Shown here: piece after piece, positions 10,361 to 32,600 of the stretch | How positions within the stretch are numbered: position 1 is the stretch's first letter | Layout of the letters: every line of letters begins with the position of its first letter | NCBI GenBank assembly: GCA_002269645.1 | Contig: NIVC01000359.1 | Coordinates: forward strand, 186,001 to 250,000 | Origin: Macrostomum lignano | Taxonomy: Eukaryota | Length of the DNA stretch: 64,000 bases | Reading direction: 5' to 3' | Made by a program: the position numbers and the translations under genes | Notes under the pieces: model-generated | The model's database searches: none | The model's input: only the letters and a program-made list of their open reading frames with translations | What the model was told of the DNA's origin: nothing

Positions 10361-13300
10361 ATGGAACAAAAATCCATGGACGATGAGCTTCGTTGCGACA
10401 TCTGTCGCGAGTTTTACCGCGACCCGCGCGTTATGCCGTGCGGCCACTCGTTTTGCTTGGACTGCATTCGTCAATGGGTGCAGAATAAGCCGATTTGTCC
10501 CATGTGCCGCGGTCCCGGGCCCAGCCCCGTCTGTGTTGACAGCCTGCCGCGCAATTTCGCCGTTGCTAGCCTGGTTAGTAACAGTTTGGCGTGATTATGA
10601 CAACAGCAAAATCGTCATAACTCCATATAATAAAAATAAAAAATTGAACTGTCTAAGGGGTCGGCCTTCAATACCTCGTGGGTGAGAATCGAGCCTCAAA
10701 TTAATGTGATCGCGCATGGAATCGAATCAGGGGTCGTGACGCAAAATTCAGACTGTCTGAAGGTTTTTAACCTGCCTTGTTCCGTCTTGGTCTAGCTGAC
10801 TCTGTCAATGTAGACCTCAATTAGAAGTTTCTTTGTCTTTAAAGTGATTTTTTGACTCTCGTCAAGACTCAAGTAAAAAGGAGCATTCGGGACGGTCTTA
10901 CTTAAGTAGGATGGAGCATTCGGGATGGTTTTACTCAAGTAGGAAGGAGCATTCGGGATGGTTTTACTCAATTAGGAAGGAGCATTCGGGATGGTCTTAC
11001 TCAATTAGGAAGGAGCATTCGGGATGGTCTTACTCAATTAGGAAGGAGCATTCGGGATGGTCTTACTCAATTAGGAAGGAGCATTCGGGATGGTCTTACT
11101 CAAGTAGGATGGAGCATTCGGGGCTTAAGCAGGATGGAGCATTCCGGAAGATCGCGATCAAAGGTACAGCATCATACAGCCTCAAACATTAGCATCCTTG
11201 GTCGAAAACGCAGAAAAATCTCGTGAAAATGTTGAGTTGAGATCAAACTTGATGGTTGTACTTCATTCCAGTCTCGTGGAATCGCAGCAATCCACTACTT
11301 GTTAATAAGTTGACCATTTTCCAGCAGAAGAAACCTGTGCACAGGTATACTTGCATCTTTCTCATGCTGACGAAAGGCCAGTATTGCAGCGAGGTACACA
11401 GGTCCATGAATGTGTTACTCTCTTCCTCGCCCTAAACTTGATAAGGACTCGAAGACGCTTGACAGCTAGAAATAGGCAGATTTGCAACTAGCTTGGTTTC
11501 GGACATAGACATGGAGTGAGTTGAGATTTGAGTGAATTTAGTTAGCATCGGCTTATTTAGAGCAAAAAATTAGAGGTGGGACACAGCTAACACAGAATCT
11601 TGGCATTTGTATGAAAATCATCATCACAAAAACCTCAAGATTTCATCCTGACAATATGCGTCACTCTATTCGAACAAAATTGAACCCCAGAAATACCATC
11701 GTATCGTATTTTAGATTGTTCGAGCTACCGAATCTGCTCAATCCGATGGCGCTGAATCCTCGGCTGGCTCGACTGCTGCCGCTTCAGGTGTCGGTGGCCC
11801 AGTCGCTGGTTCAACCGTTGGATCTAGCTCCGGAGCTGACGCTGCTGCCGCCGCCTGCGTCCAATGCGATAGTCGTAGCCGCCATTCAACGGTGTGCCGT
11901 CACTGCTGGCGCTCTCTGTGCCAGATCTGTATGAGCGATCACGTCTCCTTATTGCGCAGCAGCCTGATGCAGAGGGCCGACGATTTACTATGCGACGCCA
12001 GCCTGCGAAAAAGCGAAGCGCGCCTATTTATCCAGAGCGCATCGGAATGGCAGGTCGTTGTCGATGGTGTGAAAAGTTTGCAGAATGTTGTTAACAACAT
12101 CGCGGCCAAGGTTGATTTGTTTGCCAAATCTTGGCACAATGTTGCGAGTAGCGAATCAATTGCCGAGCTAATCTCCGTTGCTAAGGAGGCCAAGAAAATT
12201 GGCAGCGGGACCTACGGCATCAATCTGAACGATCCGGTCGAACTGTCGACCTATTCGACCGTCATTGACGGCATCAGGCGTCGCCTGGAAGAGGTTGACG
12301 GTGGCACTAACATGCCCGAACTGCCGAGTGGCTACGGGGATAGCTTGGCCCAGGTGATGAGTGCCATACCTACCGCTCACGACGCGGCGGACTGTCTCAA
12401 AGATCTTGTTGACATGCTGCCGAAGGCGCCCGCTATGCCGCCAGAAGCTCTAGCCGTGGCCAACGCGGCTGCCCAGCTGACGCAGCCGGTGCCCCCGCCG
12501 GCGCCTCAATGCAAGGACGCGGCTGTTTTACTGCTAACTGGCCGAAAGCTTCGCACCATTGCCGGCGAATTTATTGCCAAGGGCAGGCACCAGATTGCCA
12601 TTGAGATAAGTCGATCAGCGGCGGATCTGCTGCATCCTAGCATTGACCTCGCCGGCAGGTGCGAGCTTGGCTACACGCTCTGCGTCTTTGCCGACGCCCT
12701 GCATTGCCATGGAGATAGTAGAGAAGCCTCCCGCCTCTTGTGCGACGCTTTTCGCGTATTTGGCGAAGTTGGCCTCTATAATGGCCTGCTAGTTGTGCCT
12801 ATTGTTGCCTCAGTGTTGAGAACTCTAATTGAGTCGGATTCCGTTAGCGATGCTAAACGATTGTGCCATGACGTGCTTAACGCTATTATTTCGCTTGTAA
12901 GCTGTTCTTCTGACTGAGTTCTTGCTAGCTAAGTACTGTCTTTATTGCCACCACTTCCCGTATTGACGCCTTCTCGTCCACCTTGGAGGACTGCTATCCA
13001 CTTTCTCGTCCACCTTGGAGGACTGCTATCCACTTTCTCGTCCACCTTGGAGGACTGCTATCCACTTTCTCGTCCACCTTGGAGGACTGCTATCCACTTT
13101 CTCGTCCACCTTGGAGGACTGCTATCCACTTTCTCGTCCACCTTGGAGGACTGCTATCCACTTTCTCGTCCACCTTGGAGGACTGCTATCCACTTTCTCG
13201 TCCACCTTGGAGGACTGCTATCCACTTTCTCGTCCACCTTGGAGGACTGCTATCCACTTTCTCGTCCACCTTGGAGGACTGCTATCCTTTTTCTCACCAA

Positions 13301-13989
13301 TTCTTGTGGACTGCTATTCATACTCAGTATTATTTTCTATCCAAATAAGAAGACATTCAGATGTATGCAAAGTGGTGCAATATTCTTTCCAAATATTTTC
13401 CTGAATTTTGCAGAGCGTCATGTGGGCTCAACCCCAGCTTGGCATTAGAGCAACTCAAGATCGGGACAATCGATCAGTAGAGGGCCTGCTTAGAATCCTG
13501 CTTGATCTGTGCCGCCAAATGCTGCCTCCGTCTGGCACTCAGCCAAATCGATTCCAGATCATCGCCGATACTATTCGCAATCTGCGCTTCGCTCTTGGTC
13601 GCGTTCTAATCGATAAACAGTCGTTCAATTCGGCCGAGAAAGTCTACATAGCCGTGCTCCGCTCTGGCGGTGCCCCCGGCCGCCTTATCTGTCAGCTTGT
13701 CAATAGCAATAATAGCAACTCCGCCAGCTCGGCTAGTTCAACTTGTAATAGCGACGCCGATGTTTTTGGTAGCATCGATTGGAGTTCGGTGTCCTCGCCT
13801 GACCTGCTCAACGCTCTGGCCGCGGCTGCTCGCATTCTAGCCGATGTTGTTTATAGAGAGCTGGATCGTCCAAGTCGCAGTTGCGAGCTGCTGCGCGACT
13901 GGGCCGCGAAAGCTGAGCTGGCTGCTGGTAGCCTTCGCCAACAGCAGCAGCAGCAACCTCTGCAGGATGAGCAGCAGCAGCATGATTGA
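10361..13989 (+). CDS. TRIM-like protein (RING, B-box, coiled coil, helical/TPR-like C-terminus), ~656 aa, 3 coding exons
   Basis: Exons 10361-10573, 11715-12896, 13414-13989; all GT-AG, phase 0, frame-consistent. RING CDIC...CGHSFC..C...CPMC; B-box CVQC...[16 protein letters not shown]; poly-Q before TGA. Confidence 0.85.
10879..11145. repeat. 33-bp intronic minisatellite (TRIM intron 1)
   Basis: Unit aggagcattcgggatggtcttactcaattagga, about 8 copies. Confidence 0.92.
12968..13300. repeat. 32-bp intronic minisatellite (TRIM intron 2)
   Basis: Unit ccaccttggaggactgctatccactttctcgt, about 10 copies. Confidence 0.95.
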
Positions 13990-14821
13990 ACATTGAAGTG
14001 GAAACGTTTCAATCAATAGTTCGGAGTGCATCAGACACTAAACAAATTCGTTTTGTTCTTTTTCTTTGTTAACCACATTTTGATTTAAACGAGTAATAAA
14101 CAAAACAAACAAAGAAATTTGGCTTCTTTTTTATCGAAGCAGTTTGTTTTGTTCAGTTAGGCGTTAATTGAATCATCTTCCAGTTTGTTGGACCTCTATG
14201 CTGTTGGACTTTATTTACGGATAAGATGTGCTTTTTCTATCAGTGTCGGTTTATATCGTTATTCTGTGCGTTGGCCTTGTTTGCCGAACATTAGAATTTT
14301 TCACAATTCAGTCTTAATAGCAGCTTCTAGTAATATTATATCTATAATTGTTTACAAGAAGTTTAGAATAGTCTGTTTATTGTTTGCATTTGTCTTTAAT
14401 AGTTGCATTATCAGTTCCCCTTTCCTTTTTCACTCCCCAAACCTCTGTTTTTTCGTTTCTACATCGATGTTACTTTGTTTTTTGTCAGCTTTTCTGCGGA
14501 AAAAATACAAGCCGTTTTGAATTTACATCTTTTAGTGAAAATTTTTTGAGCTTTTTGCTATTGTCTTGTCTTTTGCTTTTTTGTTCGCTTCCACTGTTGC
14601 GACCAAAAGTCTAATATTAGAGTGCAGTGCAGTAGTATTTGTCAGGCCAGCCAGCGCCCATAAACCAAAAACAAAATATTTTTTTTATATTTTCTAATTT
14701 TAATCGGGGGATTGAAAATATTTAGCTTGATGGTTATTGAGCTCGTAAAATTGAACCGAAATCCAGTTTGCACTGAGCCGCTATAGAAATTACCACAGGA
14801 CACGATTCCTGTTAAATCTTG

Positions 14822-15885
14822 GTTGTCCAGGACGTCTTGTCGCCTGTTAAATATTGGTGTCCATGACATCTTGTCGCCTGTTAAATATTAGTGTCCATGA
14901 CATCTTGTCGCCTGTTAAATATGGGGTCCAGGACATCTTGTCGCCTGTTAATCTTGGTGTCCAAGAAATCTTGTCGCCTGTTAAATATTAGTGTCCAAAA
15001 CATCTTGTCGCCTGTTTAATATTGGTGTCCAAAACATCTTGTCGCCTGTTAAATATTGGTGTCCAGGACATCTTCTCGCCTGTTAATCTTGGTGTCAAGG
15101 ACATCTTGTCGCATGTTAATCTTGGTGTCCAAGACATCTTGTCGCCTGTTAATCTTTATATCCAAGACATCTTGTCGCCTGTTAGTCTTGGTGTCAAGGA
15201 CATCTTGTCGCCTGTTAAATATTGGTGTCCAGGACATCTTGTCGCCTGTTAATCTTGGTGTCAAGGACATCTTGTCGCATGTTAATCTTGGTGTCCAGGA
15301 CATCTTGTCGCCTGTTAATCTTGGTGTCAAGGAAATCTTGTCGCATGTTTATCTTGGTGTCCAAGACATCTTGTCGCCTGTTAATCTTGGTGTCCAAGAC
15401 ATCTTGTCGCCTGTTAATCTTGGTGTCCAAGACATCTTGTCGCCTGTTAGTCTTGGTGTCCAAGAAATCTTGTCGCCTCTTAAATATTGGTGTCCAAGAC
15501 ATCTTGTCGCCTGTTTAATATTGGTGTCCAAAACATCTTGTCGCCTGTTAAATATTGCTGTCCAGGGCATCTTGTCGCCTGTTAAATATTGGTGTCCAAG
15601 ACATCTTGTCGCCTCTTAATCTTGGTGTCAAGGACATCTTGTCGCATGTTAATCTTGGTGTCCAGGACATCTTGTCGCCTGTTAATATTGGTGTCAAGGA
15701 CATCTTGTCGCATGTTAATCTTGGTGTCCAGGACATCTTGTCGCCTGTTAATCTTGGTGTCAAGGACATCTTGTCGCATGTTAATCTTGGTGTCCAGGAC
15801 ATCTTGTCGCCTGTTAATCTTGGTGTCAAGGACATCTTGTCGCATGTTAATCTCGGTGTCCATGACATCTTGTCGCCTGTTAAAC
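14822..15885. repeat. 29/30-bp satellite array (~35 copies)
   Basis: Unit gtgtccaagacatcttgtcgcctgttaatcttg or ...aaatattg; a second short array of the same family lies at 17053-17218. Confidence 0.95.
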
Positions 15886-16725
15886 CTTGGTGTTCAGTAT
15901 AGGATTTCTAACCTACATAGATGCGGTGTAGTTTTTTATGCCCCCTAATGTAGCTACGCAGTGCGCGCTCGTGTGGCATTTTGCATCAGGCCAGACCAGC
16001 GCTTCTCTCTCCCCTCATGACCGCTCTGCCGCCATGGCCAACGGCCCCTCCTGCACTATAAATATACACGATCTTGTAGCCCAAAGAGGCACTGCTGGTT
16101 TTAGATCTAGAATGTGACGTCAGATAAAAGCATCTCCGGTGTTGTTTGTTCCTCCGCTGTCTGAAGGCAGAAGATAACCGGTGTTATGAACATCACAAAG
16201 CATCGCGTTATACTCGTATTCAGGTCATTTGTAAAGCTACGTTTTGGCATTTCCGAAGCCAGGTTCCACTGCGGGGCGGGCTGTTGTTACTCGGCAATAT
16301 GCTGCGAGCATAAAAGTTTATAGTCCTAATATTTAAAGGCCTAATATTGTAAGTCGCAACACCTGTGCATACGAGCTATCAGTCAGTAACACAATCGAAA
16401 TATAAATCGATGAGCTTGCGGGGTAAAATGGCAAAACTTTGACCTCTTCAATTTAGCTTGTTGCACGTGTTTCTGACTGCTAGCAAGTCTGCTTCTGCTT
16501 TGAGCTACGGTCTACTGTTTGGTAAAAAGACATTTTATAGCTAGCTCGTATTTTGATAAACTTCCATGCACGATAATTATAAAAAAGCGTTTACTTTTTA
16601 ATTATAAACTGGAACCTATGCAACAGAATAAAGTTTGAAATGTCAATGCTAGTGATATAATATCCTTAATTTATAGCATGACTTTTCTACTGACTCAAAT
16701 TTCAGCTTCAGGCTCATCGCTAGGA

Positions 16726-19700
16726 ATGAATTCTACTGAGCCATATCCTCTGCGCCTGGCCTTGACCGCGGCGCAGGCGCATGTACTGGCAATGCGGGCG
16801 TCAAATTTCAACAGTGGTAGCGCAGAGATTCGCGCCAAATTTCTCATTATTCACGATCAGTTGCAAGAATCTGATTCAGCGAATCCTGCCAAATTCGTGT
16901 GTAACGCTGCACCGTTCATGTTTGTGTGAAATAAGTCGACCTAATGTGATATTTTTGTCATACTGATCGTAACATCTGTTAGTTGTGTTTGGAACGCTCT
17001 TTGGGACAGTGAATATTCATCCGAAAATCCTTTCTGTCGTACAATAAATTTTAGTGTCCAGGATATCTTGTCGCCTGTTAAATATTGGTGTCCATGACAT
17101 CTTGTCGCCTGTTAAATATTGGTGTCCATGACATCTTGTCGCCTGTTAAATATTGGTGTCCATGACATCTTGTCGCCTGTCAAATATTGGTGTCCATGAC
17201 ATCTTGTCGCCTGTTAAACCTTGGTGTTCAGTATAGGATTTCTAACCTACATAGATGCGGTGTAGTTTTTTATGCCCCACTGTAGCTACGCAGTGCGCGC
17301 TCGTGTGACATTTTGCATCAGGCCAGGCCAGCGTTTCTCTCCCCTCATGACCGCTCAAAAAATGTTGATTTTTTAATTTAGTTTTTTTCGGGTTCCTGTG
17401 GATATGAAAGCAAGCACAGACAGTCTTCCCATAAATGACTCACTTTGTCTCACTTGTCTCTACGCAGATTCTCCAGCTGTTCGGCGACACTGAGACCTGC
17501 TCGGCTGCTTGCAGGCGCCTGTTGAAAAACATGTGCAGCGGTAACTCCGACAGGTGTGCTAAAATATTATTATTTTTTCTTCATACTTTCTAGAACAAAG
17601 TTTGCATTGCTATGCCATAATTCTCTAACAAGTGCCTCTATTCCCCACTCCAGGCCGTCCACTCTGCGCATGCTGCTCGACCCGGCACACGTCGGCAAAA
17701 TTGTCGGTCGCGGCGGCGTCACGATCAAGAATATCCAATTCGAGAGCCACGCCAAAGTGTTTATTTTTGAGTGAGTAAATGTGGAGTTTCTTAGTTCAAA
17801 ATCGAATCGATTCTGCCCGATCGTCAGACATGTACACCCCCACGGCCAGTTTTTTGTTCGCGATCCTCAAATGAATGCGGCCGCTCAGGGGAATCGAACC
17901 AGGTGTTGTGGCGCGAGTCAGACGCGTTTACCGCTGAGCAGTGCGATCTTTGATGTCCATTTTCATTGTGTTAAAGTTGAAGGCATCGACACAGGTCCTA
18001 CAGTCGAAACAGACTCGAGCACTTGACGTTCCGACATCTCGAAGAGGCCTAAAAAGGCGCTGCTTTGAACCCCAGAATAACCAGATCATTCTTGGCCGTG
18101 TGCTACCCAGCCACAGACGCAGGGAAATGAAACCCCCCCCCAAGCGGTCGTCGTGCTCAATTCGCCATGCGACCCATACCGTCGCGGACATTCGCGCATT
18201 GAGACGTTTCTAACAAAGAATAAAGACCTTTGCTGGTAGTGACCTTCAGGCTATTCACCTCACCCCGCTTGAGGCCACTCCCTGTCCCTCTGAACTTTTT
18301 CGCGAGCGTGTGAGCACTAAGGGTCTTTGACTCGTCAGCGTCTTTGTATCTATCCAATAACCAGTTGTGTCACTCGCAAAGAATGCGCTCATCTACTCTT
18401 TTCAGTACCAAAATTAGCGTTTTTTGTTCGTGTAGAAAAATGAAAAAAACTAGTACAATTTTCTAGACATTTTTAAAGTTTTTGAAGCTTCAACAATCGC
18501 CTGTGGCTGTCTACAAGCTGCATGTTTCACGGACTACAGACTGCCTGAATTTAGGAGCGAAGATTGCGGGAAAACTTTCTCATATGCTCCTTTCTTCCTT
18601 TCTTATTTCTTTGATTCATAGATGGGAGAGGTTTCTGCGGGTCGTGGTTCGCTTTCAAAATCTCGGCTTGGCATGCAAATGATATTTCAGCACTCCTCTG
18701 GCACTGATGACCGAATGCAGCCAGTCTGTGGCTTTCACATTGGCCAAAGTGGCTCTGGTTCGCGGCTCACTTACGGCCGTAGCCTCGGCTATTGAGCAGC
18801 TGCTGGCGCTGTCTCGCAGTTTGTACCTGGCCAATCCGCCAATCTCGCTAGTGCCAAAGCGGCTATGGCTGAGACTCCAGCAGCTCGGACACTGGTTGGA
18901 TAATCCCGAACAGTTTGTAGACGCGTTTCTAGCTGCGCGCTCCATCAATCGCAAGGCTCAGAGGCTGGCTGGCCGGCTATTCTATGGGAAGAGCGGGCGC
19001 TTCAACGACAGCTGGAATAGCGGCTTGGCTGAGACTTTGAATGCCGCTGAGGTTGCTGCTGCTTCCAAAGAATCTTTGGGTAAGGCCAAGTACGGGTGTT
19101 AAATAGTAAAATAGAATCTTAGACAGTAAGCTCACCAGGTAAGTACCTTACCTGGCGTTTTTTTTAGTGCTTTATCTGGTGTTTTTAGTGCTTCATCTGG
19201 CGTTCTAGTGCCTCACTTGGCGTTTAGTGTCACACCTGGCGTTTATTGCCTACTTTTGGTGTCTCACGTGACTTTATTACCTACTTATGGTTCCTGCATG
19301 CATCTTACTCCGTACCTCACATCCTTAAGGGTTCCCCAGTGCCGAAGAATATCTACCGAATTCTCCCGCACTGCCAAAGCCTCCATCGCTGGATTTCAGT
19401 CCGGGAGCTGCACTGCCTGGTCCACCTGACCTGCTTGTATTCGCCAGTGGGTGTCGAGCTAATAAAATCGGCTTTCAAAGCCGGCAAAGCCGCCGCTGCC
19501 GCTGTCGGACACGAGCTGACCGTCCGTGTGGTCGGGTCGCCGGAGTACCGCCTGATTCTGAAGCCGGCAGCCTCCGCCAGTGCCGCCTCTCCAACCGTTC
19601 CAAGCGAAGCCGCAATGTCCGCCGTCTTAACCGAAATTCAATCATGGATCGCTTCGGCTGGCCAAGCTGACGGCTGCGAATTCCGCGTCCTCGACCGTGG

Positions 19701-19983
19701 GCCGACGGACTCGAAGATCCACCGTCAGCAGCTGCTGGCTCTGCTGCCGCGAAGTCGGAGGCGGGACTCCAGCGTCGACAGCGAATCGGACGGCGATAAA
19801 GAAAACGACAGCAAGGAAGAAGAGGGACCCGTCTGCGAGAAGCAGCCTACTTGGAAGCCAAGCGTCAAAGGTGCGCTGGGCCGCGACAGCTGGCATTTCG
19901 CTTTCGGCGTCACCTTTTTCAAGAATGCCGGCTCTTCCATTGCCCGCTGTCTGAGTCGCAGCTTAGACGACTGCTATTGCTAG
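16726..19983 (+). CDS. KH-domain protein with an eIF2-alpha-like (domain II/III) C-terminal half, ~468 aa, 5 exons
   Basis: Exons 16726-16896, 17468-17553, 17654-17770, 18691-19079, 19340-19983; GT-AG with matching phases (0,2,2,1), total 1407 nt. Canonical KH: LRMLLDPAHVGKIVGRGGVTIKNIQFESHAKVFI. The first KH is degenerate (no GxxG) and the exon 1 donor (GTGTGT) is the least certain. C-terminal LTCLYSPVGVELIKSAFKAG...VRVVGSPEYRL resembles eIF2-alpha domain III. Confidence 0.75.
17053..17356. repeat. Dispersed copy of the satellite tail plus ~140-bp unique module, also present at ~15740-16027
   Basis: Near-identical aaaccttggtgttcagtataggatttctaacc...cccctcatgaccgctc follows the 29/30-bp repeats in both places. 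Confidence 0.85.
17880..17948 (-). mobile_element. tRNA-like head (probable tRNA-derived SINE or tRNA pseudogene) in intron 3 of the KH gene
   Basis: Minus strand gcactgctcagcggtaaacgcg...ctggttcgattcccc carries A-box-like and B-box (GGTTCGATTCC) motifs; acceptor and anticodon stems are degenerate. Confidence 0.5.
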
Positions 19984-21977
19984 AGCAGGTGTGCTCTGGG
20001 CTACTTGCATAGCTGCAATGATTCCAGAGACAATACAGTAGTTGTGAATGGTTGTTACAGTTGCAACCAGTTTGAACTCATCAGCAGCATTATAAACTGT
20101 CAGCTTCACCTTGAACCAAGGGCTCAAGGTCTCTCCCAGCTCGTTTCTCTCCTCTCCTCTTAGGCTCCTCTCGTCGATCCTCGCCTTTCCTCTCCTCTCT
20201 ATTCCCTCTCCTTTCCTCTCTCATCTGGCCGCCCCCAAGCCATGAGCTGGATTCTTCGTCTGGCCCTTGAGATAAAAAAGTTTGCCGACTCTTGCTTTAG
20301 AACAAAAATTTGTTTGTTTAGTTGGCTGCAGCAGTCACCCTGTGGTGGTGGTGGTTTTCTCTGCAATCCTTTGTCAGACTCGTGTACCAGATATTTAAAA
20401 GGTTTTTTTATTTTTTCAAGTTTCATTCGAAAATTGACTGGTGATTCTTAAATGTGCGTTAAAAAATCAATCGATTTGGTTTGAGGTGCTACAAATAAAG
20501 CTTTTATGATTGACATCGGACTTGTATTTCCAATCGCAGAAACCAATCGGAATGTGCAGGTCGAATAGGCTCTGGTGCTGATAAACCGCCAGCACAAAGC
20601 CTATTATAATTGATATCGCCTCTGAAAGCTACAGTACCTACATGTACTAGATCAACTGCTAGCCAAAAACAACAAAATTAAGCGCAGTCAGTTATTAAAA
20701 AAACATAAGCATCATGCCACAGTGCGGCTAAAGAAGGCCGTCCTAGCGACTGAATCTGGGCGTTGGATGGTAACCGTCAGCAAGCTTATAGGAACTCGCT
20801 GGGGACTCGCGAACAACTTCCAACAATGCTCGAGCAATAGAACTTTCAACTAATCGGCCCCATTTACATGTATGGTGTGGTTCTATTTTGAGGCGATGTC
20901 ATTTCTATAAAAGTACATTTACATGAACTGAATCTGTCCTACATGTAGTGTCCCTAGTGTAGTATTAATTACACAAGTGTAATTTAATTAGCAAACAGAA
21001 TCGCTGTTACTACCGTTTATATTCTACCTACATGTGCATGTACACGCTCCCCCGCCGTTGGGCATAGCCGCTAAGCCGGGACTTCACCTGTGGATACGCA
21101 CAGGCTTGCAGCTTTTCTTTAATAATTATTGCGCAACCTTGCAAAAACTACAATAGATTGGCCTCAGATTCTTTGCTTACTACCTTTCAGTAGGTGATCT
21201 CTTGCTATAACTGGCCAACAAAACCAGTAAACCAATGGAAAAATAATAAGCAGTCCAGTGCGTGATTTTCGATTACATAAAGGTTCGACATGACCGCAAA
21301 TTAATAGGCGTATTGCATTCCAATTACTCGTATATTAACATTAATTAGCATCAGAGTATGAGTTCATTATTTCTTAATGACTATAAAATTAGTACACACC
21401 AACACCGATAAAGTATGAAAGGAAGCAGGCTCTGTTCGATGGTGTACGTTAGTATTGGTACGATAAGCTACTGAGAGTACTATATTACACGTACTTTAGG
21501 AAACCTATCACTAAGGTATTTAATGACAACAAGCAGAGGCGGGTTGATTAAAAAGGTGACGCAAAATTGCATGCCCCAATTTTTTACTTTTGCTACTCTT
21601 AGTAGTCTGACTCGGACTTTCTATTGACGAATAAATTAGCAGAAATTTAAAACAAATACAGTTAGCTCTGACTTGGATTGTTGTAACTAAATAACAAAGC
21701 TAAAAAAACACAAACAGCAACTAAAAACCAACAAAACTAAAAATCAAAAAACAAACCGAACATTAAAATTCAAGCACAGCTTTAAATTACATATTGTACT
21801 GTAAACTACCATAATAATTCCATAAAGAAAACTAACTCTGCGAAAACGAGTAGCATGCGATACATTAATGATAAGAGTGCCATTCCGATAGTCTTTAGTC
21901 AGTTAAAATATTATCTGCGATGTGTAACATAGGACTTCATCGTTAATCAATAAATCCATTTCATTTATTTTTACGCT

Positions 21978-22110
21978 AATCTAACTAAATCATTTTTGCG
22001 CAAATCTAACTAAATCATTTTGGCGCCAATCTAACTAAATCCTTGTGGCGCCAATCTAACTAAATCATTTTGACGCCAATCTAACTAAATCCTTGTGGCG
22101 CCAATCTAAC
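21978..22110. repeat. ~26-bp tandem repeat
   Basis: Unit aatctaactaaatcattttggcgcc, about 5 copies. Confidence 0.85.
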
Positions 22111-22245: not shown

Positions 22246-23551
22246 CTATCTAGCGCTGTTAAAGCTCTCGAGCGAGGACATCATCAGGACGGCGCGCTCC
22301 CGGCGCGCTCTCAGCACGGCTAGGTGGGCGGTCAGGCTGCCAGCGGGGGGGCGGTACGGTCGATTCGGCCATCGCCGAACGCAGACACAGCGCGCGGTGC
22401 CGCCGCCGCTGGTGCTGCCATTTTCAGCCTCCTCAGAGGCCGACTGGAGGCCCAGATAGCCTGCGGCGCTGTGCACCACGAGACGGTCGCACGGCGCCAA
22501 AGGGCCGCTCACCCAGTCCGCCCAGGGCGCGCAGCCGTCCTTTGTTGAAAATTAAAAATTGGAATCAAATAAAGGTAAAATTTATGCGACGGAAAATAAA
22601 GTACAGTAAGTACTGCCACCTGTCAATCAGTACCTCTCACTGCCACCTGTCAATCAGTACCTCTCACTGCCACCTGTCAATCAGTACCTCTCACTGCCAC
22701 CTGTCAATCAGTACCTCTCACTGCCACCTATCAGTGTCTCCCACTGCCACCTGTCAATCAGTACCCATCACTGCCCACCTGTCAATCAGTAGCCATGGAT
22801 ACTCGGAGCCATGGAACTCCCGGCTCACCTGGAACAGGTCCCGCAGCTCGGTCTCCAGCCTGCCAAGTTCGGCATGGAAGCGGCTACCCGGTGTTGCTCG
22901 GTGCAGCGCAAAGTCCCGGCAGGTGGCGCTCAGGCGGCTCCAGGCCTGGCCGGCGGTGGCCACCCCGCCGGCCGGCTGCACCAGCACCGCCTTCAGCTCG
23001 GTGTCCTCCGCCAGCTGCTCCTCCTCCTCGTCCTTGTCGCCGCCGGCTTTGGCCAGAAAGTCGGCCTGCTGTTCGTCCGTTAATTCGTTGAACTGGCGCC
23101 AGGCCAGCATCTGGGCGGGGTCCAGGAACAGGCTGGACAGAGGCGACTCTGGCCACGGACAGCCGGACACGTCTTCGTCCGTGACCTCGGCCACGGCCGC
23201 CAGGCTGTGCAGGTAGGCCTCGTTCACCTGGCGGCGCTTCCAGCGCTTGCCGGGCCTGCCGTAGACGCTGCCACCTCCGCCACCGCCTTGGTGCTGCTGG
23301 TGCTGCTGTTGTTGCCTTGGCAACGGTCGCCTAGGACGCAGCCGACGCATAGCGGCCAATCCGAGTGGCCTTGGCGGGTCGAGTGTCGAATTCGACGAAA
23401 CCGACATGCGATCGTCGGCGTCGGTTATAGACGAGGCCAGACTGGCGGACGACCTGCGGCAGCGGCGGCGGCGGCAGCGGCGAGAGGAGATGGCGGGCAG
23501 GTGGGGAGGCAGAAGGGGATTAGCCGATGCTTCTTTTGCTGGCTGGATCAC
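22246..23551 (-). CDS. R3HDM4: R3H domain-containing protein 4-like (R3H-associated N-terminal domain plus R3H), 2 exons; start codon unresolved
   Basis: Exons ~23551-22829 and 22539-22246 (CAG|GTGAGC donor, AAAG acceptor, phase 0). GKRWKRRQVNEAYLHSL, AWRQFNELTDEQQADFL, RLETELRDLF and CDRLVVHSAAGYLGLQSAS match remembered R3HDM4 motifs. Confidence 0.78.
22612..22790. repeat. 27-bp intronic minisatellite (R3H gene intron)
   Basis: Unit ctgccacctgtcaatcagtacctctca, about 6 copies. Confidence 0.92.
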
Positions 23552-25422
23552 TCAGTCATGCTGTGCCAGGCTGTTCTCTAAGCCAGCTAGTCACGTGACT
23601 AATGCTCAGCCTAATAGCAAATACTGACTGTTCGCTTGATTAATTTCAATTCACACCAAATCGGAGGCTTTAAAACAATAGTTATATAACTTAATTATAA
23701 ATTTTCCTCATAAAGTCTTAAAAGCAAAGCATTCAGTATGGAATGCTATAAATTCTGTTTAACAGTGCCCCAATTTTGGTTGTTTTTAGTTTTGGAACAA
23801 TTCTAGAGAATATCAATTAAGCTTTGCTCTTGTATTAATCTGAGACTAAAATATAGTCAAGCATGACTGAGGGCAGCTATGCAAAATGCAAATGATTAGA
23901 TTTGCAAATTAATGAAGCAGACGCTAATTGTATCAATTTTCATTTATCTGCCTTAGTTGGGAAAAGGCATTGTTGGAGACTGTTTAGCTTGGAGTCTTTC
24001 TTTTCTATATATTAGAAAAAAGGTACACATCAAAAATATTTATTAAAATATTATTAAAACTGATAAGAAAAAAATGATTACATAAAAGGCTATGCTAATA
24101 CTAGTGATAGATAATATTAAAAGGTATATAAAAGTAAAAGTACTCTGAAAGAAAAGTCTTTACCAAGAATAATATTATATTTTAGGCTTTTATTGTCAAT
24201 TTAGTTGAATTTTATATAACTTTCTTAAACTTTTCTACAATAGTAGCATTTATAGTATAATAATTAAATTATTTCATTATAACAAAATAATAATGACTGC
24301 CACCTATTTCATTATAATGAATTAACATACTTTTTTCAATCTAGAGATTTAGATTATAAAATTTCAATATAATAAAAGTACATAAAAGTTCTAAGGTAAC
24401 AAGTTGTCAAAGTATATATAAGCATATATAACACAGGCCTAGGATTTTAAAATCTTAAGAAAAATAGGCAATAAGCACATTTGCCTATTTAACATAAAAC
24501 AAAACTTTTTAGTTTCTTATACCAAAAATTTTGGCATTCTTCTCAAATCATTCCTTAAACAACTTTTAATATTTTATGCATTTTCTCCTCTTGAAAAGCT
24601 GATTTTAGCATGTTTGGACATCCCAAAGCTATTAAACCAATAAAATTAACAACTTTGTTTTTTAGTACTTTTTCCATCTTTAGCAATTCCTAATGATTCT
24701 TAACAATTCAAAAATCAAAGTTTTTTATTTTGGATTGGTGTGAATTGGTACAATAAATGATAGTGCTGCAGGATAGCCTCTTGGCATGCTGCTGATAGAC
24801 TTAATGGTTAATGGTCCTAGCAAGAACTTAGCAGCAAGAACATAAGTCTGAGTGCTCATACTTCCCTTCAATCTAACCAACTCATCCCTTTGGGCCATAG
24901 ACACTCTTAAGCATCAGTGCCATATTAGACAACATGTATCATATTTTCCATTCTCCAAATATTTGTACTTTTTGTTTTGCAATTCAGTCTTGTACTTGTC
25001 TACTATGCTCTTCCCCACAGACAATTCCAACCATTAATTGGGACATTAGATTGTAGTGACCTTCGCGAACTTTCTTTAGTGTATGAATAATAGAAATTTC
25101 CCGATATGGTAATATTAAATATTCTACGCTTTTCCTGAAATTTCCATCATGTTCACAATATTATTTCTACACCGTCTATGCATAATTAGTTATTAATTTA
25201 CATGAATTCTTGTACTGTAACACTTAGTCACTATTTGAGCAATATGTACATACAACTTAGTTTTGTTATAACGATGCACGTTTTTCCAGAACTTTCCGGA
25301 AACCCCAATTTCATCTATAAATACACGAAACCAGAAATGCAATAATTTTAAGTTCTTTTCAATCACTCGATTGACTCAAATAAACAGAGCATTCAACTGC
25401 TAAAGTCTTTACAACTGGTCCG

Positions 25423-26436
25423 GTGAGGCGGATCAACGCAAATACATCGAACCTACTGCCTCCTCCACCGACGGAGCAACCTCCATTACCAGTCATCAGC
25501 CAGCCCAGCGGTGTTGCTTCACCACCGTCGATAAGCCCGCCTAGCACCACCGCCGCGGCACCGTCGATTAGCCAGCCCAGCGTCCTTTTCTCGCCGGCTG
25601 CGATGCCGCCTTACCAGCAGGCTGTGGCTGCCGTCAGCGTCAAAGCCCCGCCGTTCTATTGCAACAACCCAGACGCTTGGTTCCAGATGCTGGAATCTCA
25701 GTTTAAGTTAGCCCTCATCACATCCGAGGAAACAAAGTACCATCACCTCGTGTCCAACCTGCCAGAAGACGTCGCATCTGTTCTCCTGTCGTCTGAGACT
25801 CCTGCCAACTACACTCTACTGAAGACCAGCATCTGCAACATGATGCAGAAGAGTAAGCAGGAGAAGATTAACGAACTTCTGGCGACATCGGACCTCGGCG
25901 GCGACAAGCCCTCGATTTTTCTACAACGCCTCACAGCCAAGATGTCGCAATGCGGGATACAACCAGCCAGCTGCCCGGACATGGTCAAAGCCACGCTGTT
26001 GCGCTGCCTACCGAGCGAATTCCGCCTGGCCTTGTCTGAATTCCAGGAACAGACTCCAGCACAGCTTGCCTCCATCGCCGACTCGATGTTCGCCGTCCAG
26101 AATTCATTCGGTCGGGTCAACGCAGCGCAACCAGAGCTCATTGCGGCTGTACCAGCAAAACCAACTGGTGACTTCAACAAGGCTCGGAAAACTAGAAGCA
26201 ATGGGATGAAGCCGTTCAAAGCAGGTCAACGCCTCGTCATCTGCCGCGCTCATATCTTCTACGGCCAACAAGTGCGTACCTGCCGCCACTGGTGCCAGTT
26301 TCCAAAGGCACCCAGTCACTTCCCGCGCGTCTTTATGAACAACGAGGCGACGCCAGCGCAATCGCGATCATCCTCACCAACGCGAAACAGCCCAACTCTG
26401 GGAAACTGGGCGACGCTGCCCAACACGCCGCAGTGA
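25423..26436 (+). CDS. gag: Gypsy gag with CHCC motif
   Basis: VKAPPFYCNNPDAWFQMLESQF; CRAHIFYGQQVRTCRHWC (C-x2-H-x9-C-x3-C, typical of the CsRn1 clade). The track start is GTG, so the true start may be a downstream ATG. Confidence 0.85.
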   Translation: MRRINANTSNLLPPPPTEQPPLPVISQPSGVASPPSISPPSTTAAAPSISQPSVLFSPAAMPPYQQAVAAVSVKAPPFYCNNPDAWFQMLESQFKLALITSEETKYHHLVSNLPEDVASVLLSSETPANYTLLKTSICNMMQKSKQEKINELLATSDLGGDKPSIFLQRLTAKMSQCGIQPASCPDMVKATLLRCLPSEFRLALSEFQEQTPAQLASIADSMFAVQNSFGRVNAAQPELIAAVPAKPTGDFNKARKTRSNGMKPFKAGQRLVICRAHIFYGQQVRTCRHWCQFPKAPSHFPRVFMNNEATPAQSRSSSPTRNSPTLGNWATLPNTPQ

Positions 26437-29400
26437 GCAGCGTCAGCCGAGGAAATGCGGCGACGAAGCACTTCTTGGTGGTGGACCTCACATTCAACGG
26501 TCAATGTCTGTCCTTCCTCGTCGACACAGGAGCCGCTGTGTCCATCATTCCGCCAAAGTATCTCCACCAGGCTCTTCAGGCTACCGGTTACAGATTGACT
26601 ACCGCCACCGGCACGTCCATTCCGGTTTCTGGAGAGATCACTCTCACCGTCTCCATCCGAGGACTTCGTCAATCCTTTTAGTGGACCTTCCTCGTCGCCG
26701 CCGTCATCCAGCCGATCCTTGGTTATGACTTCCTATCCCGGTACGGTCTTTTAGTTGACTGCAAGGCACGACAACTGGTGGATCCAGAAACTACGCTGCA
26801 CACGCAGACTCTACCTGTCACCAGCCTGCAGCTTGACAGCTTTGCCGTCTCCTTGGCATATCCCGAGCATTGCGATCCGAGAGTGCAACAGCTCATCGAT
26901 CGTTTTGCCGACACCTTCTTGTACGTCGAAGGTGGTCGCCTGCCTAGAGCTGAGGAGGTTAAACACAACACGAAGCACCACATCATCACCAACGAGCATC
27001 CTCCGACACATGCCAAAGCGCGACAGCTACATCCCGAGAAGCTTGCCATAGCCAAGGACGAGTTCCAGCAGCTGATCGACGCAGGATACCTTCGGCCTTC
27101 CGCCAGCAACTGGGCATCAGCTCTTCATATGGTCCCCAAGAAGGACAACGGTGTACCTAACGGAAAATGGCGACCCTGCGGTGATTACCGGCAGCTCAAC
27201 AAGTTGACCAAACCGGACAACTATCCTATTCCGCACATCCAGTGCTTCACAAAGAGTCTTCACGGTGCAAGGATCTTCTCGAAGCTGGACCTCATACGAG
27301 CGTACCACCAGATTCCGATCGCCGATGAAGATATTCCGAAGACCGCCATTATTACGCCATTCGGCCTCTACAAATGGACCCGCATGCCGTTCGGGCTGCG
27401 GAACGCAGCGCAGACATTCCAGCGCTTCATTGACAGCGTCCTGCGGGGTCTTCCATATGCGATAGCCTACGTTGACGACCTCCTGATCGCATCGCCAAAC
27501 GAGGAGGATCACCTGCGACACCTGGAATCAGTCCTGACTTGTCTATTGGAGCACGGACTCAAGGTACAGCTCAGCAAGTGCACCTTCATGCAGCCGGAGG
27601 TAACCTTCCTGGGACATCAGGTGTCAGCCGAGGGCATCAGGCCGCTTGCCTCCAAGGTCGACACCATCCGGCAGTGGCCGATTCCCAAGGATGCCAACGC
27701 ACTGCGTAGGTTTATCGGTGTCATCGGCTTCTACCGCCGTTTCATCCCGAAATTCACTGACATTGCCGCGCCTCAGCAGGATCTCGTTACTACATCTCTG
27801 CAGTCTCCACGATCCTACAGATGGAACTCGGTTCATCAAGAAGCCTTCGACAAGCTCAAGGCTGCCTTGGCAGAGCGGTTGCTGTTGCAGCACCCGGATC
27901 CGAATTGCGACGCCTATAGCCTTGTCACGGATGCTTTGTCTTACAGTGTCAGCGCAGCTCTTTATCAAACGACTGGCAATGTCGCGACGCCCATCGGCCT
28001 GTTCAGCAAGAAGCTGACAGCAACGCAGCAAAAATACTCAGCTTTCGACAGGGAACTCCTCGCAGTGTATCTCGCTGTTCTGCATTTCCGGAGCCTAATC
28101 GAGGGACGTGAAGTAACGGTTTTCACGGACCACAAGCCCCTAGCTCAGGCGTTCCACAGCAACAGCGGCGGAACTTCCGACCGGAATCAACGATACCTGA
28201 GTGTCATCACTGAATACGTCACGGACATCGCCTACATCCGCGGCTCCGATAACATTGTCGCTGATGCGCTCTCCCGGCTCGACGAAGCGGACATCAGCCA
28301 GGTCAACAACGTCCAGCAGCTGTCACCCATAGACATTCCGGCCATCGCAGACGAGCAGAAGTGGGAGCAGCTGCTGTCACTCGATGGTTGCCGACCCTAT
28401 CCGGTGGACGGTCAATGAACCCTGCTCTGCGAGACCTCAACAAACTATCCGCAGCCGGTCGTCCCTGAGTCGCTGCGACGCCCGGTACTACAGCACTTTC
28501 ACGACCTGGGACACTTCGGCTCCCGCAAGACCGCCCACCTCATCACGTCACGCTACTTCTGGCCAAATATGCGTAGCAACATTAAGGCCTATTGCCGAGC
28601 CTGTGAGTCCTGCCAGCGCAACAAGATTAGCCGCCACACGGTATCTGGAAGCTCGGCATTCGACCTGCCTTCGAATAGATTCGAGACGGTGCACATTGAC
28701 ATCGTCGGGCCTTTGCCAGTTCTGGAACGCCAGCACGACGTCTCATGCGGCTTGTCTCCTCGGTATCTTCTCACCATGATAGACCGGGGTACCAGCTGGA
28801 TCGAAGCAGCGCCGATCGAGTCCATCACAGCCCAGAGCGTCGCCTCTGCCTTCCTAGCAACCTGGATCTCACGATTCGGGGTGCCCCTCTACATCGTGAC
28901 TGATCGCGGGGCACAGTTCGAAGCGGACCTCTTCAACATCCTGGCTGCCAGCGTTGGTTTCTACCGCCTCCGTACGACTGCCTACCATCTGCAGACCAAC
29001 GGCAAAATCGAGCGCGCCCATCGAACGCTCAAGAACATCCTGAAGGTTTGTGGACAGTCCTGGCTTGACAATCTACCACTTGCACTGCTCGCCATGCACA
29101 TCTCTCCCGATGAGAACGGCATCAGCCCCTTCACGCGTCTCACGGGGGAGCACCCAATGCTTCCACGAGTCCTGGTTCCCGACGACGTCAATCCTCAGTC
29201 TGTTCGGCTGCGCATGGACGACATCACTGACGGTACGCGATCTTCGACTTCCACGACCAAGCTGTACATCCCTGCCGACCTCTGGACAGCAGAAAAGGTC
29301 TGGCTCTGTGTGGATCACGTTCGCAAGCCTCTAGAAGCACCTTATCAGGGGCCCTATCCTGTCATCCGTCGGACAGACAAGTTTTTCATCATCAAGGCTC

Positions 29401-29642
29401 AGCCTGGTCGGCAGGAGGCCATTTCGATTGACCGTCTGAAACCATTCCGCATGGCCGGTGGCACCATCAGTTCAAGGCTACCCGCCAAGAAACAGACGTC
29501 CACGGAATCTCGCCAATGTTCCCAGCCAACACCTGTGCTCAACCAGCCGGATGCAGCCGCTAAGGGAGACAGCACCCCAGTGATCACCCGGAGTGGCCGG
29601 CATGTGCGATTCAAGAAGTGCAATGACTATATGTACTTTTGA
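26400..29642 (+). pseudogene. pol: Gypsy pol (protease, RT, RNase H, integrase) in the -1 frame, with two in-frame stops
   Basis: FLVDTGAAVS; [16 protein letters not shown]; TDHKPL; HHCC then HIDIVGP, VTDRGAQF, NGKIER. Stops TAG at 26679-26681 and TGA at 28416-28418 lie in one continuous frame. Confidence 0.92.
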
Positions 29643-32600
29643 TCACTGACTGCACTTTATCTAGGCCATCATCTGCTAGCTGTCCCACCTGATAGTTTTT
29701 TCCCCAGGACTCCGTCTTCCGCGGGGGGGGACTATTGTAGTGACCTTCGCAAACTTTCTTTAGCATATGAATAATAGAAATTTCCTGATATGGTAATATT
29801 AAATATTCTACGCTTTTCCTGAAATTTCCATCATGTTCACAATATTATTTCTACACCGTCTATGCATAATTAGTTATTAATTTACATGAATTCTTGTACT
29901 GTAACACTTAGTCACTATTTGAGCAATATGTACATACAACTTAGTTTTGTTATAACGATGCACATTTTTCCAGAACTTTCCGGAAACCCCAATTTCATCT
30001 ATAAATACACGAAACCAGAAATGCAATTATTTTAAGTTCTTTTCAATCACTCGATTGACTCAAATAAACAGAGCATTCAACTGCTAAAGTCTTTACAAGA
30101 TATTTCAGCTAACCTATTTACTATGTTAGTTTAAATACAAGTTCAACTTGCACCTTAGGCCCTTCATTTCTTTTCTACCCTGCTCATCACTTATATTATT
30201 AGTTATTAATTAATTGTCAACTTTGACAACATAATTCCCACATTTTTGCACTAGTCTGAAATCAGAAACTTTAAACTTCAAACCGCTAGGAATTGTTAGG
30301 AATTGCTAAAGATGGAAAAAAGTACTAGAAAACAAAGTTGTTAATTTTATTGTTTTAGTAGCTTTGGGGATGTCCAAACATGCTAAAATCATAATGAAAA
30401 TAGTGAAAATAATTTAACAATTGTATAAAAATAATGTTTTTACAGCATGAAGTGTAGGGCCTATACCAAAGATTAAAGCAATCATGATATATATACCAAA
30501 TTTTGTGCTACTTTTTGTGACCCACTTCCCATTTGAATTTTTATTGAAAAAGTTATACAAGACCACCAAAAAATGCCTAAATTTTTAAACTAGGTGGCCT
30601 AGGCTGAATTTAAAAAAATTGGTAAGACAGTTCTTGCAAAAATCCATTACAGACATAAAACAGCACAAAATTAGTATTTAAATTTGATTTAGTATATGGA
30701 TGGTCTAAGATACAAGGCGTACCTATGGCATACCTACCTAGTATACTATAGACTATAGTATAAAAGTTAACTTTAGTTCAAGACTAGGCCCTAGACAACT
30801 AGAGAATTGAAAATCAACTTACATCGAAACACCACTACTTGATGCAATATCCATGACTTATGGTTAATACTTGATAAGTTACGCTTTCTTTGAAACAATA
30901 AATAACTCCTTACAGATTACACTGCAAACGGAATATATTGCACAATATATGCAAATCAGCAGTGTCCGAAAAAATCCGAAATCAGTTCGTTTTTACGTCT
31001 GTTAAACTTGTAAAGATGCAAAATTAATTTTACAGATTAGTGAAGCTAGGAAAAATGCATTAAAATACTTTTTTAGAATAAATTTAGGATTATTTTACTT
31101 TTTTGTATTTTTTGTAAGATATAAGGTATTATAGATAGATTTATTTAAATGAGTACTTCACGGTTAAGGTTGCGAGCCTGCAATGAATGCAATGCAAACT
31201 AATTAAATTTTTTAGCTACTTCACTGTCTAAATTTTGGAAACGAGTCTATCCCAATAAAATCTCTGAGAATAGTCGATTCTGTCGATGTGCAGAACTTTC
31301 GCGAAGGTTACTACATGCTGACGTAAAATACCTTAACCTGGGGGGAGTACTTCGAGCTAGGGAAGCGCAAAACCCATCTGGACGATATAAAGCTACTGCG
31401 TCGACACAAAGGTCATGCATGGGTCATTGGTCATAGCAAACGTTCAGTCGTGCATCAGATTAAAGGAAATTCAAGTCCAAAATATATATACTTTTTCTTG
31501 ATTGATTTTGTCAAATATATCATGCATGTACAGGTATATATGACCAAGATGAAACTGGCGTTCTCGATGACAGAAGCCATGATGACATGCATTATAGCTG
31601 CATAAATGTATGTACATGTATTAAGAATGAAGATCACCAGCTAAATACATGTAAATTAATGTGGGTTACACATGTGAACTTCGACGAGCAATGGCCTCGG
31701 TGGGAAAAATTCGCGCGGACCATGCAACTTCGGCGGGCAAACTCCGCGCAGACAATTTTATATATCGACCCTAAAATAGCCAGCATCTGTGCATATATGT
31801 ATGGCTCATTGGGAAAAGCAGTACATGTACGTGGATGAATCCTCTGTGCTCCGACCTTTACTGCATGTAGCCGTAGGTATGTTGATGATACCTAGATTTT
31901 TTATTTGGCTAGCAATCATGCAGAGTGGATTTATCCAAGTCATTACCCTTACTCACCCGAACTGTTCACTGTTGACGGGTTTGATCGTGCCTAGACATTG
32001 TTAGCGCTAAGGTGTATCGCAAACACATTTTTCAATGCGGTGTTCCCGCGCTGGTGGTAAACGGGTCTGATTGGCTGCACTTTGCACAGCGTTTAATATC
32101 TGCAAATACCTGGCAATCCCTTTACCAAGAATTGATCGATTCACCTCATTGATAATATTCAACAGAATGCTTATCCTGGAAGTTTCCTTGCTAAAGTGTT
32201 TAATGGCTTTCTGACAAAGAAAATGATCCCCCCCCAATAAGTGTATCAGATTTGACGAATCTAAGGTGTCTAACTCTACACATGTATAACTAATGAGTTG
32301 ATCAAATTCCAATTCATTGGTGCTCAATCTCTGATTCTTGAAAAAAAGGCTTAAAAGAACTTTCTTGAAGTACTTGAACTCTTAAATCTTGGTTGTGTTT
32401 CAGCCAGTCCGCTAAAATCGGTCAGTTTATTTTGTTAGCAGGTTGGAAGCGAAGGTCCCTAAAGCTGGTGTCGTGCATAAATTTTGTTGCTATCTTGATC
32501 CGGGCAATTTCTACATGGAAAAACCAAAAGACACTATGCCTAGGGAGCACACCTGGCTAGTCGCACCCGACTAAGCTGTTCACTATTCCGGATAAGTGTA

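Follow-up and report, generated by a model that had tools for sequence, protein, structure and literature searches.

To our knowledge, the three-domain architecture of eIF2α, a subunit of the translation initiation factor eIF2, is nearly invariant in eukaryotes and archaea alike, and its N-terminal lobe acts as the center of the integrated stress response. This one independently folded lobe of eIF2α is made up of the S1 and helical domains. A flexible hinge (residues 184-190 of the human protein) joins it to the C-terminal domain, and the latter forms the other lobe together with the β and γ subunits (bioRxiv 10.1101/2023.12.15.571226; PMC6412873). The C-terminal domain of eukaryotic and archaeal IF2α (e/aIF2α), i.e., domain III or αD3, is the part that binds γ; on its own, αD3 of yeast forms a complex with γ from an archaeon, and the α-γ contact is made chiefly by two αD3 loops (PMC3553985). 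In eukaryotic eIF2α, domain III is followed by a characteristic acidic tail that modulates tRNA binding (PMC3553985). Here we describe a gene of the flatworm Macrostomum lignano, located on the forward strand at 16726-19983 of a 64,000-nucleotide stretch of contig NIVC01000359.1 (hereafter the window, whose coordinates are used throughout), whose product very probably carries a highly divergent but true homologue of domain III behind an N-terminal KH di-domain, made of a degenerate, putative KH1 and a canonical KH2. The order of the parts in the product is KH di-domain, a helical region of about 88 residues, the domain III-like domain, an acidic tail of the eukaryotic type and 51 orphan residues (Table 1). 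As judged from sequence and models, a lobe of the γ-binding type would thus be kept, and an RNA-binding module would be found where the lobe that senses kinases and eIF2B would sit.

The resemblance to domain III was detected with several profiles. In the 468-residue gene model of the preliminary description of this locus, Pfam EIF_2_alpha (PF07541) matched residues 277-327 at 25.9 bits (gathering cut-off 22.8 bits; E = 1e-5), a match that spans only positions 58-108 of the 114 profile positions. Three archaeal aIF2α models of NCBIfam were colinear on the same stretch (NF003064, E = 1.4e-4; NF003065, E = 7e-3; NF003063, E = 3e-2). We also built a metazoan-only eIF2α profile from 15 sequences and a broad profile, in which the metazoan sequences were combined with three archaeal aIF2α sequences, i.e., one from a Woesearchaeota contig, the scan of genome contigs for archaeal aIF2α having given this one locus only, and two taken from PDB alignments. 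With hmmsearch, the metazoan-only profile scored 4.0 bits, which was reached by 4 of 20,000 shuffled sequences, in an alignment that was colinear through the acidic tail; hhalign placed the same profile on the right region with E = 0.095. The broad profile of domain III plus tail scored 24.1 bits, and none of the 20,000 shuffles reached this score (best shuffle, 10.1 bits). When compared with the broad profile by hhalign, the protein was aligned over 82 columns with 92.8% probability (E = 4.1e-7). The positions that are invariant or near-invariant from archaea to animals were found to be kept, including the G and K of PxGVELIK, the near-invariant P and the Y of GSPEYR, and the L of helix 2, and two of the substitutions (L to F and I to L) are conservative.

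The fold of this region was predicted with AlphaFold2 (AF2) from residues 250-387 alone and without an alignment, because an alignment of eIF2α sequences would itself dictate the fold that was to be tested. The model had a mean predicted local distance difference test score (pLDDT) of 74, a predicted template modeling score (pTM) of 0.63 and secondary-structure elements in the order β-α-β-β-α-β-α. In a Foldseek search of the PDB with this model, the 13 best matches were all eIF2α or aIF2α chains, with root-mean-square deviations (rmsd) of 2.2-2.3 Å over 103 columns. They included human eIF2α (9hvf_B, E = 1.5e-5; 8qzz_B, 9hve_K and 1q8k) and the aIF2α of Pyrococcus abyssi (1yz7, E = 4.7e-5, rmsd 2.3 Å over 103 columns; 1yz6) and of Sulfolobus (2qn6_B, template modeling score 0.65 on the target; 2aho_B and 3cw2_C). 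In the viral structure library BFVD, the five best matches were eIF2α homologues of giant viruses (E = 8e-6 to 3e-4). A model of the full-length protein, also predicted by AF2 without an alignment, was discarded: its mean pLDDT was 42, even the canonical second KH domain was unfolded in it and Foldseek returned meaningless helical-repeat matches. The claim of the preliminary description that the protein matches domain III in order is thus borne out by the profiles, the shuffles and the alignment-free model, which recovers e/aIF2α before any other fold.

The preliminary description had also proposed that a domain II precedes domain III. No support for it was found. Residues 166-262 (numbering of PAA69434.1, see below) scored -0.2 bits with a domain II profile made of six metazoan and three archaeal sequences, which 2023 of 20,000 shuffles reached (p ≈ 0.1); hhalign gave no alignment (probability 0.1%); and the first half of PF07541 (positions 1-57) remained uncovered. 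Of the similarity to eIF2α that had been suggested for residues ~170-400, the domain III part therefore stands and the domain II stretch does not. Helices were predicted at low confidence (pLDDT 55-70) in residues 167-254, which are about the right length for domain II and may still be structurally related to it; no relatives of these residues were found outside the species. The Pfam scan at E ≤ 10 detected no S1 domain, and the N-terminus is occupied by KH sequence, as had been stated for the position at which eIF2α has S1 and Ser51. Since there is no S1 domain, there is no Ser51 site. The detectable homology to eIF2α begins just past the position of the hinge between the N-terminal lobe and the C-terminal domain. 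With the S1 and domain II tests both negative, the product is not a full member of the eIF2α family, but a protein that contains a homologue of its domain III.

In the N-terminal part, residues 86-166 form a canonical KH domain (KH2) with a GRGG loop at residues 104-107, and residues 89-125 matched Pfam KH_1 at 31 bits (cut-off 21.5 bits; E = 2.2e-7), in agreement with the one canonical KH domain that had been described. In phmmer searches of the PDB, residues 49-169 aligned with two KH1-KH2 di-domains, those of IGF2BP1 (E = 2.9e-6) and IGF2BP3 (E = 7.4e-6); the matches over these residues ranged from E = 2.9e-6 to 1.8e-5 and included 6qey_A and 7vkl_A. The latter, IGF2BP3 KH1-2, aligned with residues 53-169, so that the β'α' half of KH2 encoded by exon 4 was included. 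The degenerate KH1 of the preliminary description was recovered in part. Its C-terminal half (residues 50-79) resembles the β'α' half of IGF2BP1 KH1, with a Smith-Waterman score of 47 that 3 of 5000 shuffles attained, but residues 1-48 have neither significant KH similarity nor a GXXG loop. The KH1 region as a whole (residues 6-80) had no Pfam match, the first 85 residues queried alone had no match in the PDB, and the protein had no close KH relative among 5.8 billion clustered proteins.

The gene was rebuilt from the sequence as five forward-strand exons with consistent phases and GT-AG borders at every intron, which confirms the phase-consistent five-exon model proposed earlier, except for the start of its last exon. 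The preliminary description gave the exons as 16726-16896, 17468-17553, 17654-17770, 18691-19079 and 19340-19983, with a product of 468 residues. In the deposited models PAA69434.1, PAA84837.1 and UniRef A0A1I8J6A1, the acceptor of exon 5 is at 19400 (...KESL|VRELHC...), not 19340, which removes 20 residues (VPKNIYRILPHCQSLHRWIS) and gives 448 residues. With this acceptor, the window encodes exactly PAA69434.1 counted from its Met, a protein that was deposited as "hypothetical protein BOX15_Mlig008331g1, partial" and for which the Pfam labels PF00013 and PF07541 had already been precomputed. The second GenBank locus (PAA84837.1, Mlig005067g1) and the UniRef entry ("KH domain-containing protein", 448 residues) have the same sequence and the same exon 4-5 junction; this junction is thus common to all the deposited full-length models, whose proteins are identical. 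The two acceptors are 60 nucleotides apart and both in frame, and use of 19340, which would add the 20 residues just before domain III, is possible as an alternative isoform.

The GenBank annotation of this assembly (Mlig_3_7) was built from a genome-guided RNA-seq transcriptome (StringTie/TACO/TBONE), and the pipeline uses trans-splice and poly(A) sites to separate transcription units (PMC5730564). Because the annotation derives from RNA-seq, it indirectly supports a single mRNA that contains both the KH exons and the 3' exon, as the preliminary description had assumed. Exon 4 encodes the second half of KH2 together with the helical region, so that both belong to one protein. Its frame stays open up to a consensus donor (TTTGG|gtaagg), and the phase there fits exon 5. 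The frame of exon 5 is open from 19228 and has no in-frame ATG before the domain III segment, the first Met being inside the domain (...EAAMSAV). The copy of the gene on contig NIVC01001324.1 differs from that in the window by no exon mismatch and three intron mismatches, and the three genomic copies showed 0 exon and 0-3 intron differences among them, which leaves a comparison of selection between copies without power. The gene is intact and expressed, and the five-exon model is real.

Table 1. Features of the KH-domain III gene of M. lignano in the window (exon 5 according to the transcript annotation).
Feature	Position	Strand	Description and basis
Exon 1	16726..16896	+	residues 1-57, ATG at 16726; N-terminal part of KH1-like region, without GXXG; open reading frame, phase, GT donor
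Exon 2	17468..17553	+	residues 58-86; with the end of exon 1 encodes KH-like residues 50-79; AG/GT sites, phase
Exon 3	17654..17770	+	residues 86-125; first half of KH2 including GRGG (17706-17717); Pfam KH_1
Exon 4, first part	18691..18814	+	residues 125-166; second half of KH2 (β'α', ...VALVRGSLTAVASAIEQLLALS); phmmer to 7vkl_A
Exon 4, second part	18815..19079	+	residues 167-254; predicted to be helical, in the place that domain II has in eIF2α
Exon 5 (transcript annotation)	19400..19983	+	residues 255-448 and TAG stop
eIF2α/aIF2α domain III-like domain	19408..19743	+	residues 258-369, β-α-β-β-α-β-α; profiles, hhalign, AF2, Foldseek
Motif GVELIK	19450-19467	+	within domain III-like domain
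Motif GSPEYR	19534-19551	+	within domain III-like domain
Basic-then-acidic, Ser-rich tail	19756..19827	+	RRRDSSVDSESDGDKENDSKEEEG; 10 D/E and 5 S in 21 residues; colinear alignment to hidden Markov model
C-terminal 51 residues	19828..19980	+	hydrophobic WHFAFGVTFFKNAG, end DDCYC; read from sequence

The last strand of domain III is followed by a helix and the acidic tail, as in eukaryotic eIF2α. Of the 21 residues of the acidic stretch (DSSVDSESDGDKENDSKEEEG), 10 are D/E, and the stretch aligns colinearly with the tails of metazoan eIF2α, so that the acidic tail of the preliminary description is upheld. The GVExIK and GxPxYR motifs are archaeal-looking, and the identity of domain III is higher to archaeal (23-27%) than to metazoan (15-21%) sequences. 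A horizontal transfer of domain III from archaea was nevertheless not preferred as an explanation, as the protein has the C-terminal helix and acidic tail that are specific to eukaryotes. The match of this helix and tail to the eukaryote-specific extension argues for descent from a eukaryotic eIF2α, and we infer that the 3' part of a eukaryotic eIF2α gene was duplicated, joined to the gene of a KH protein and then diverged fast. The C-terminal 51 residues had no match in Pfam, the PDB or the protein databases. The protein does end in CYC, as noted before (...DDCYC followed by the stop). C-terminal CXC is used for the geranylgeranylation of Rab proteins. As nothing Rab-like was found in the protein, the CYC end was rejected as a prenylation signal.

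The conservation of positions that are invariant across metazoan and archaeal domain III makes binding of eIF2γ plausible, and it is possible, if somewhat doubtful, that such binding has been retained. In the mechanism that we propose, KH2 would bind single-stranded RNA of particular transcripts, and the domain III module would dock on domain II of eIF2γ, the site of the canonical eIF2α. One outcome would be that an α-less complex of eIF2β, eIF2γ and initiator tRNA (eIF2βγ-tRNAi) is tethered to the bound mRNAs, with the M. lignano protein as a substitute α that has no Ser51; in the other, the protein would act as a competitor or decoy that withholds γ from canonical eIF2. With either outcome, the regulation of initiation on the target mRNAs would not depend on phosphorylation of Ser51. 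This combination of fusion architecture and eIF2γ mechanism is put forward as a tentative reading. Its furthest version, that the protein is a true alternative α subunit, appears unlikely: domain III would sit at the α site of eIF2γ while the KH domains hold specific mRNAs, the eIF2βγ-Met-tRNAi so delivered would lack Ser51 and possibly be independent of eIF2B, and initiation on the chosen mRNAs would resist the integrated stress response. If true, it would be the first known case in which a cell has exchanged the regulatory lobe of eIF2α for a module that targets RNA.

Several observations weigh against an eIF2-linked role for the gene. A near-invariant Lys of domain III is replaced by Thr, which is not conservative, and an insertion of 10 Ala/Ser/Pro residues follows β3. 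The protein is 15-21% identical to the metazoan sequences over domain III plus tail, and 23-27% identical to the archaeal cores. As a single-sequence query, the C-terminal 283 residues found only themselves among 1.84 billion representative proteins and no eIF2α in the PDB. The ferredoxin-like βαββαβ fold is a common one, and generic examples of it appeared among the Foldseek matches from hit 14 on, with E-values about 100-fold weaker. There is no orthologue to show constraint, and the near identity of the genomic copies means that there is no evidence of purifying selection. We found no expression pattern or phenotype for Mlig008331 or Mlig005067 in the full text of the papers searched or in the M. 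lignano supplements, the latter being covered in part, and the presence of a canonical eIF2α in M. lignano is inferred only from the essential role of eIF2.

The main rival explanation is that the gene encodes a lineage-specific KH RNA-binding protein in which domain III has lost its binding to eIF2γ and works instead as a general module for protein-protein contacts, RNA binding or scaffolding, with a function of the protein that is unrelated to eIF2; this is doubtful but to be taken seriously. The extreme divergence (15-27% identity), with a relationship that is visible only to profiles or structure, fits such a repurposing, as do the insertion after β3, the Lys-to-Thr change at a near-invariant position, the flanks without relatives (residues 167-254 and the C-terminal 51 residues) and the versatility of the ferredoxin-like fold. 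The residues that are conserved from archaea to animals are all kept, however, which would be unexpected after a long release from the ancestral interaction, and the acidic tail is kept too. The other explanations are progressively less likely. It is improbable that the gene is a young chimera without a selected function, i.e., a transcribed, open but transient by-product of exon shuffling or duplication in a redundant and recently polyploid genome. The gene is known from M. lignano only, its copies are so nearly identical that constraint cannot be shown, and repeats and a polymorphic retrotransposon are found nearby (see below) in an assembly that is extensively duplicated (PMC5730564). Yet the part derived from eIF2α is too diverged for a recent copy, and the 448-codon frame is intact all the same, the domain folds confidently (pLDDT 74 without an alignment) and the invariant residues of the family are kept; the divergence, the intact frame, the foldable domain and these residues together argue for long-term maintenance.

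That transcript assembly merged a KH gene with a neighboring fragment or pseudogene derived from eIF2α is very improbable. The exon 4-5 junction depends on short-read transcript assembly, two in-frame acceptors (19340 and 19400) are present and polycistronic precursor transcripts occur in M. lignano (PMC5730564), but exon 4 is open up to a consensus donor in a phase that fits exon 5, exon 5 has no in-frame start of its own before the domain III segment, the junction is repeated in two GenBank loci and the UniRef model, and the pipeline cuts at trans-splice and poly(A) sites. Least likely of all, and extremely so, is a chance resemblance of an unrelated ferredoxin-like domain to domain III. The pairwise searches without any eIF2α and the weak metazoan-only profile (just 4 bits; hhalign E = 0.095) would agree with it, but sequence profiles and an alignment-free structure search point independently to e/aIF2α, 0 of 20,000 shuffles reached the real score and the colinearity of the match extends over the helix and acidic tail that are specific to eukaryotes.

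No relatives of the protein outside M. lignano were found among 1.84 billion representative proteins, a set in which the orthologues that the preliminary description had suggested looking for in related genomes did not appear. It had also stated that a KH plus eIF2α architecture was not known, and we likewise found no paper in the literature that describes one, though the protein has been deposited with both Pfam labels. The gene therefore appears to encode a lineage-restricted domain fusion that is represented in the databases by M. lignano only and is apparently undescribed, though deposited as a hypothetical protein. The evidence is limited to one species and to an extremely diverged domain. 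If eIF2γ is still bound, the gene would be a natural experiment that separates two functions of eIF2α and could show how, without phosphorylation of Ser51, eIF2 is brought to particular mRNAs or kept away from them; if eIF2γ is no longer bound, the gene still documents that domain shuffling can recruit the C-terminal domain of eIF2α. The gene is testable, as RNA interference and transgenesis work in this flatworm.

The surroundings of the gene are rich in repeats. A satellite of 33-34 bp units (32.6 copies) lies just upstream at 14808-15897, and a related array of 5.4 copies is found inside intron 1 at 17045-17227. Each of the arrays is in a block of ~310 nucleotides that recurs at 15717-16026 and 17047-17356, with a motif (ttctctcccctcatgaccgct) common to both arrays that follows each of them, at ~16004 and ~17335, and the two blocks look like copies of one repeat-bearing mobile element. 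Much of intron 4 (19148-19291) is filled by degenerate tandem repeats of 19-31 bp, with units such as TTTAGTGCTTCATCTGGCG. In tRNA and Rfam scans of 14000-22000, nothing was found; the segment 17870-17950 has a tRNA-like look, and ARAGORN reported no tRNA gene in it. The upstream neighbor (~11890-14000, forward strand) is a gene of a 664-residue RING-finger protein, and the downstream neighbor (~22750-23550, reverse strand) is a gene of a 316-residue R3H-assoc (PF13902) protein; both are kept in the two assembly copies. Just downstream of the 11892-12917 open reading frame (ORF) of the RING-finger gene, a near-perfect tandem array of 10 units of 32 bp at 12971-13295 reads as repeats of a peptide unit in all three forward frames. 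Further downstream, a retrotransposon at ~25051-30098 contains three ORFs, of which the first is gag-like (25423-26436), the second is that of a reverse transcriptase (26778-28418) and the third is integrase-like (28569-29642), as labeled from their translations only. Since this retrotransposon is present in the window and missing from the otherwise colinear contig NIVC01001324.1, it represents an insertion polymorphism between the genome copies.

The described systems to which the M. lignano protein can be compared each share a part of it. With the IGF2BP/ZBP1-type KH1-KH2 di-domains, as well as the KH pairs of PCBP and Nova, it has in common an apparent pair of KH units, a short linker and the GXXG loop of KH2 (GRGG), and IGF2BP sequences are the best PDB matches of its residues 49-169. 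In contrast to the IGF2BP/ZBP1-type proteins, its KH1 is without GXXG and has an unrecognizable N-terminal half, and there are no RRM domains and no KH3-4. With domain III of eIF2α (EIF2S1/SUI2) and aIF2α, it shares the βαββαβ(α) fold, PF07541, the GVExIK and G(A/S)PxYR motifs and the invariant residues, and with eukaryotic eIF2α also the C-terminal helix followed by the acidic tail. It differs from both in having no S1 domain, Ser51 loop or detectable domain II, in its low identity (15-27%) and 10-residue insertion, and in the addition of the N-terminal KH di-domain and the 51-residue C-terminal tail. Among viral proteins, the eIF2α homologues of giant viruses (Tupanvirus, Hokovirus, Fadolivirus and others) are the best structural matches, by the domain III model only; judged by their names and lengths alone (286-304 residues), they look full-length.

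Partial forms of eIF2α are found in other viruses. Poxvirus K3L consists of the S1 domain only, and K3L and ranavirus vIF2α, which keep the S1 domain or N-terminal lobe, act as pseudosubstrates of PKR. Like them, the M. lignano protein keeps a part of eIF2α, with one interaction uncoupled from the rest. It would, however, be their complement, in that the γ-binding C-terminal lobe is kept and the kinase-facing lobe is absent, and it is cellular and fused to KH domains.

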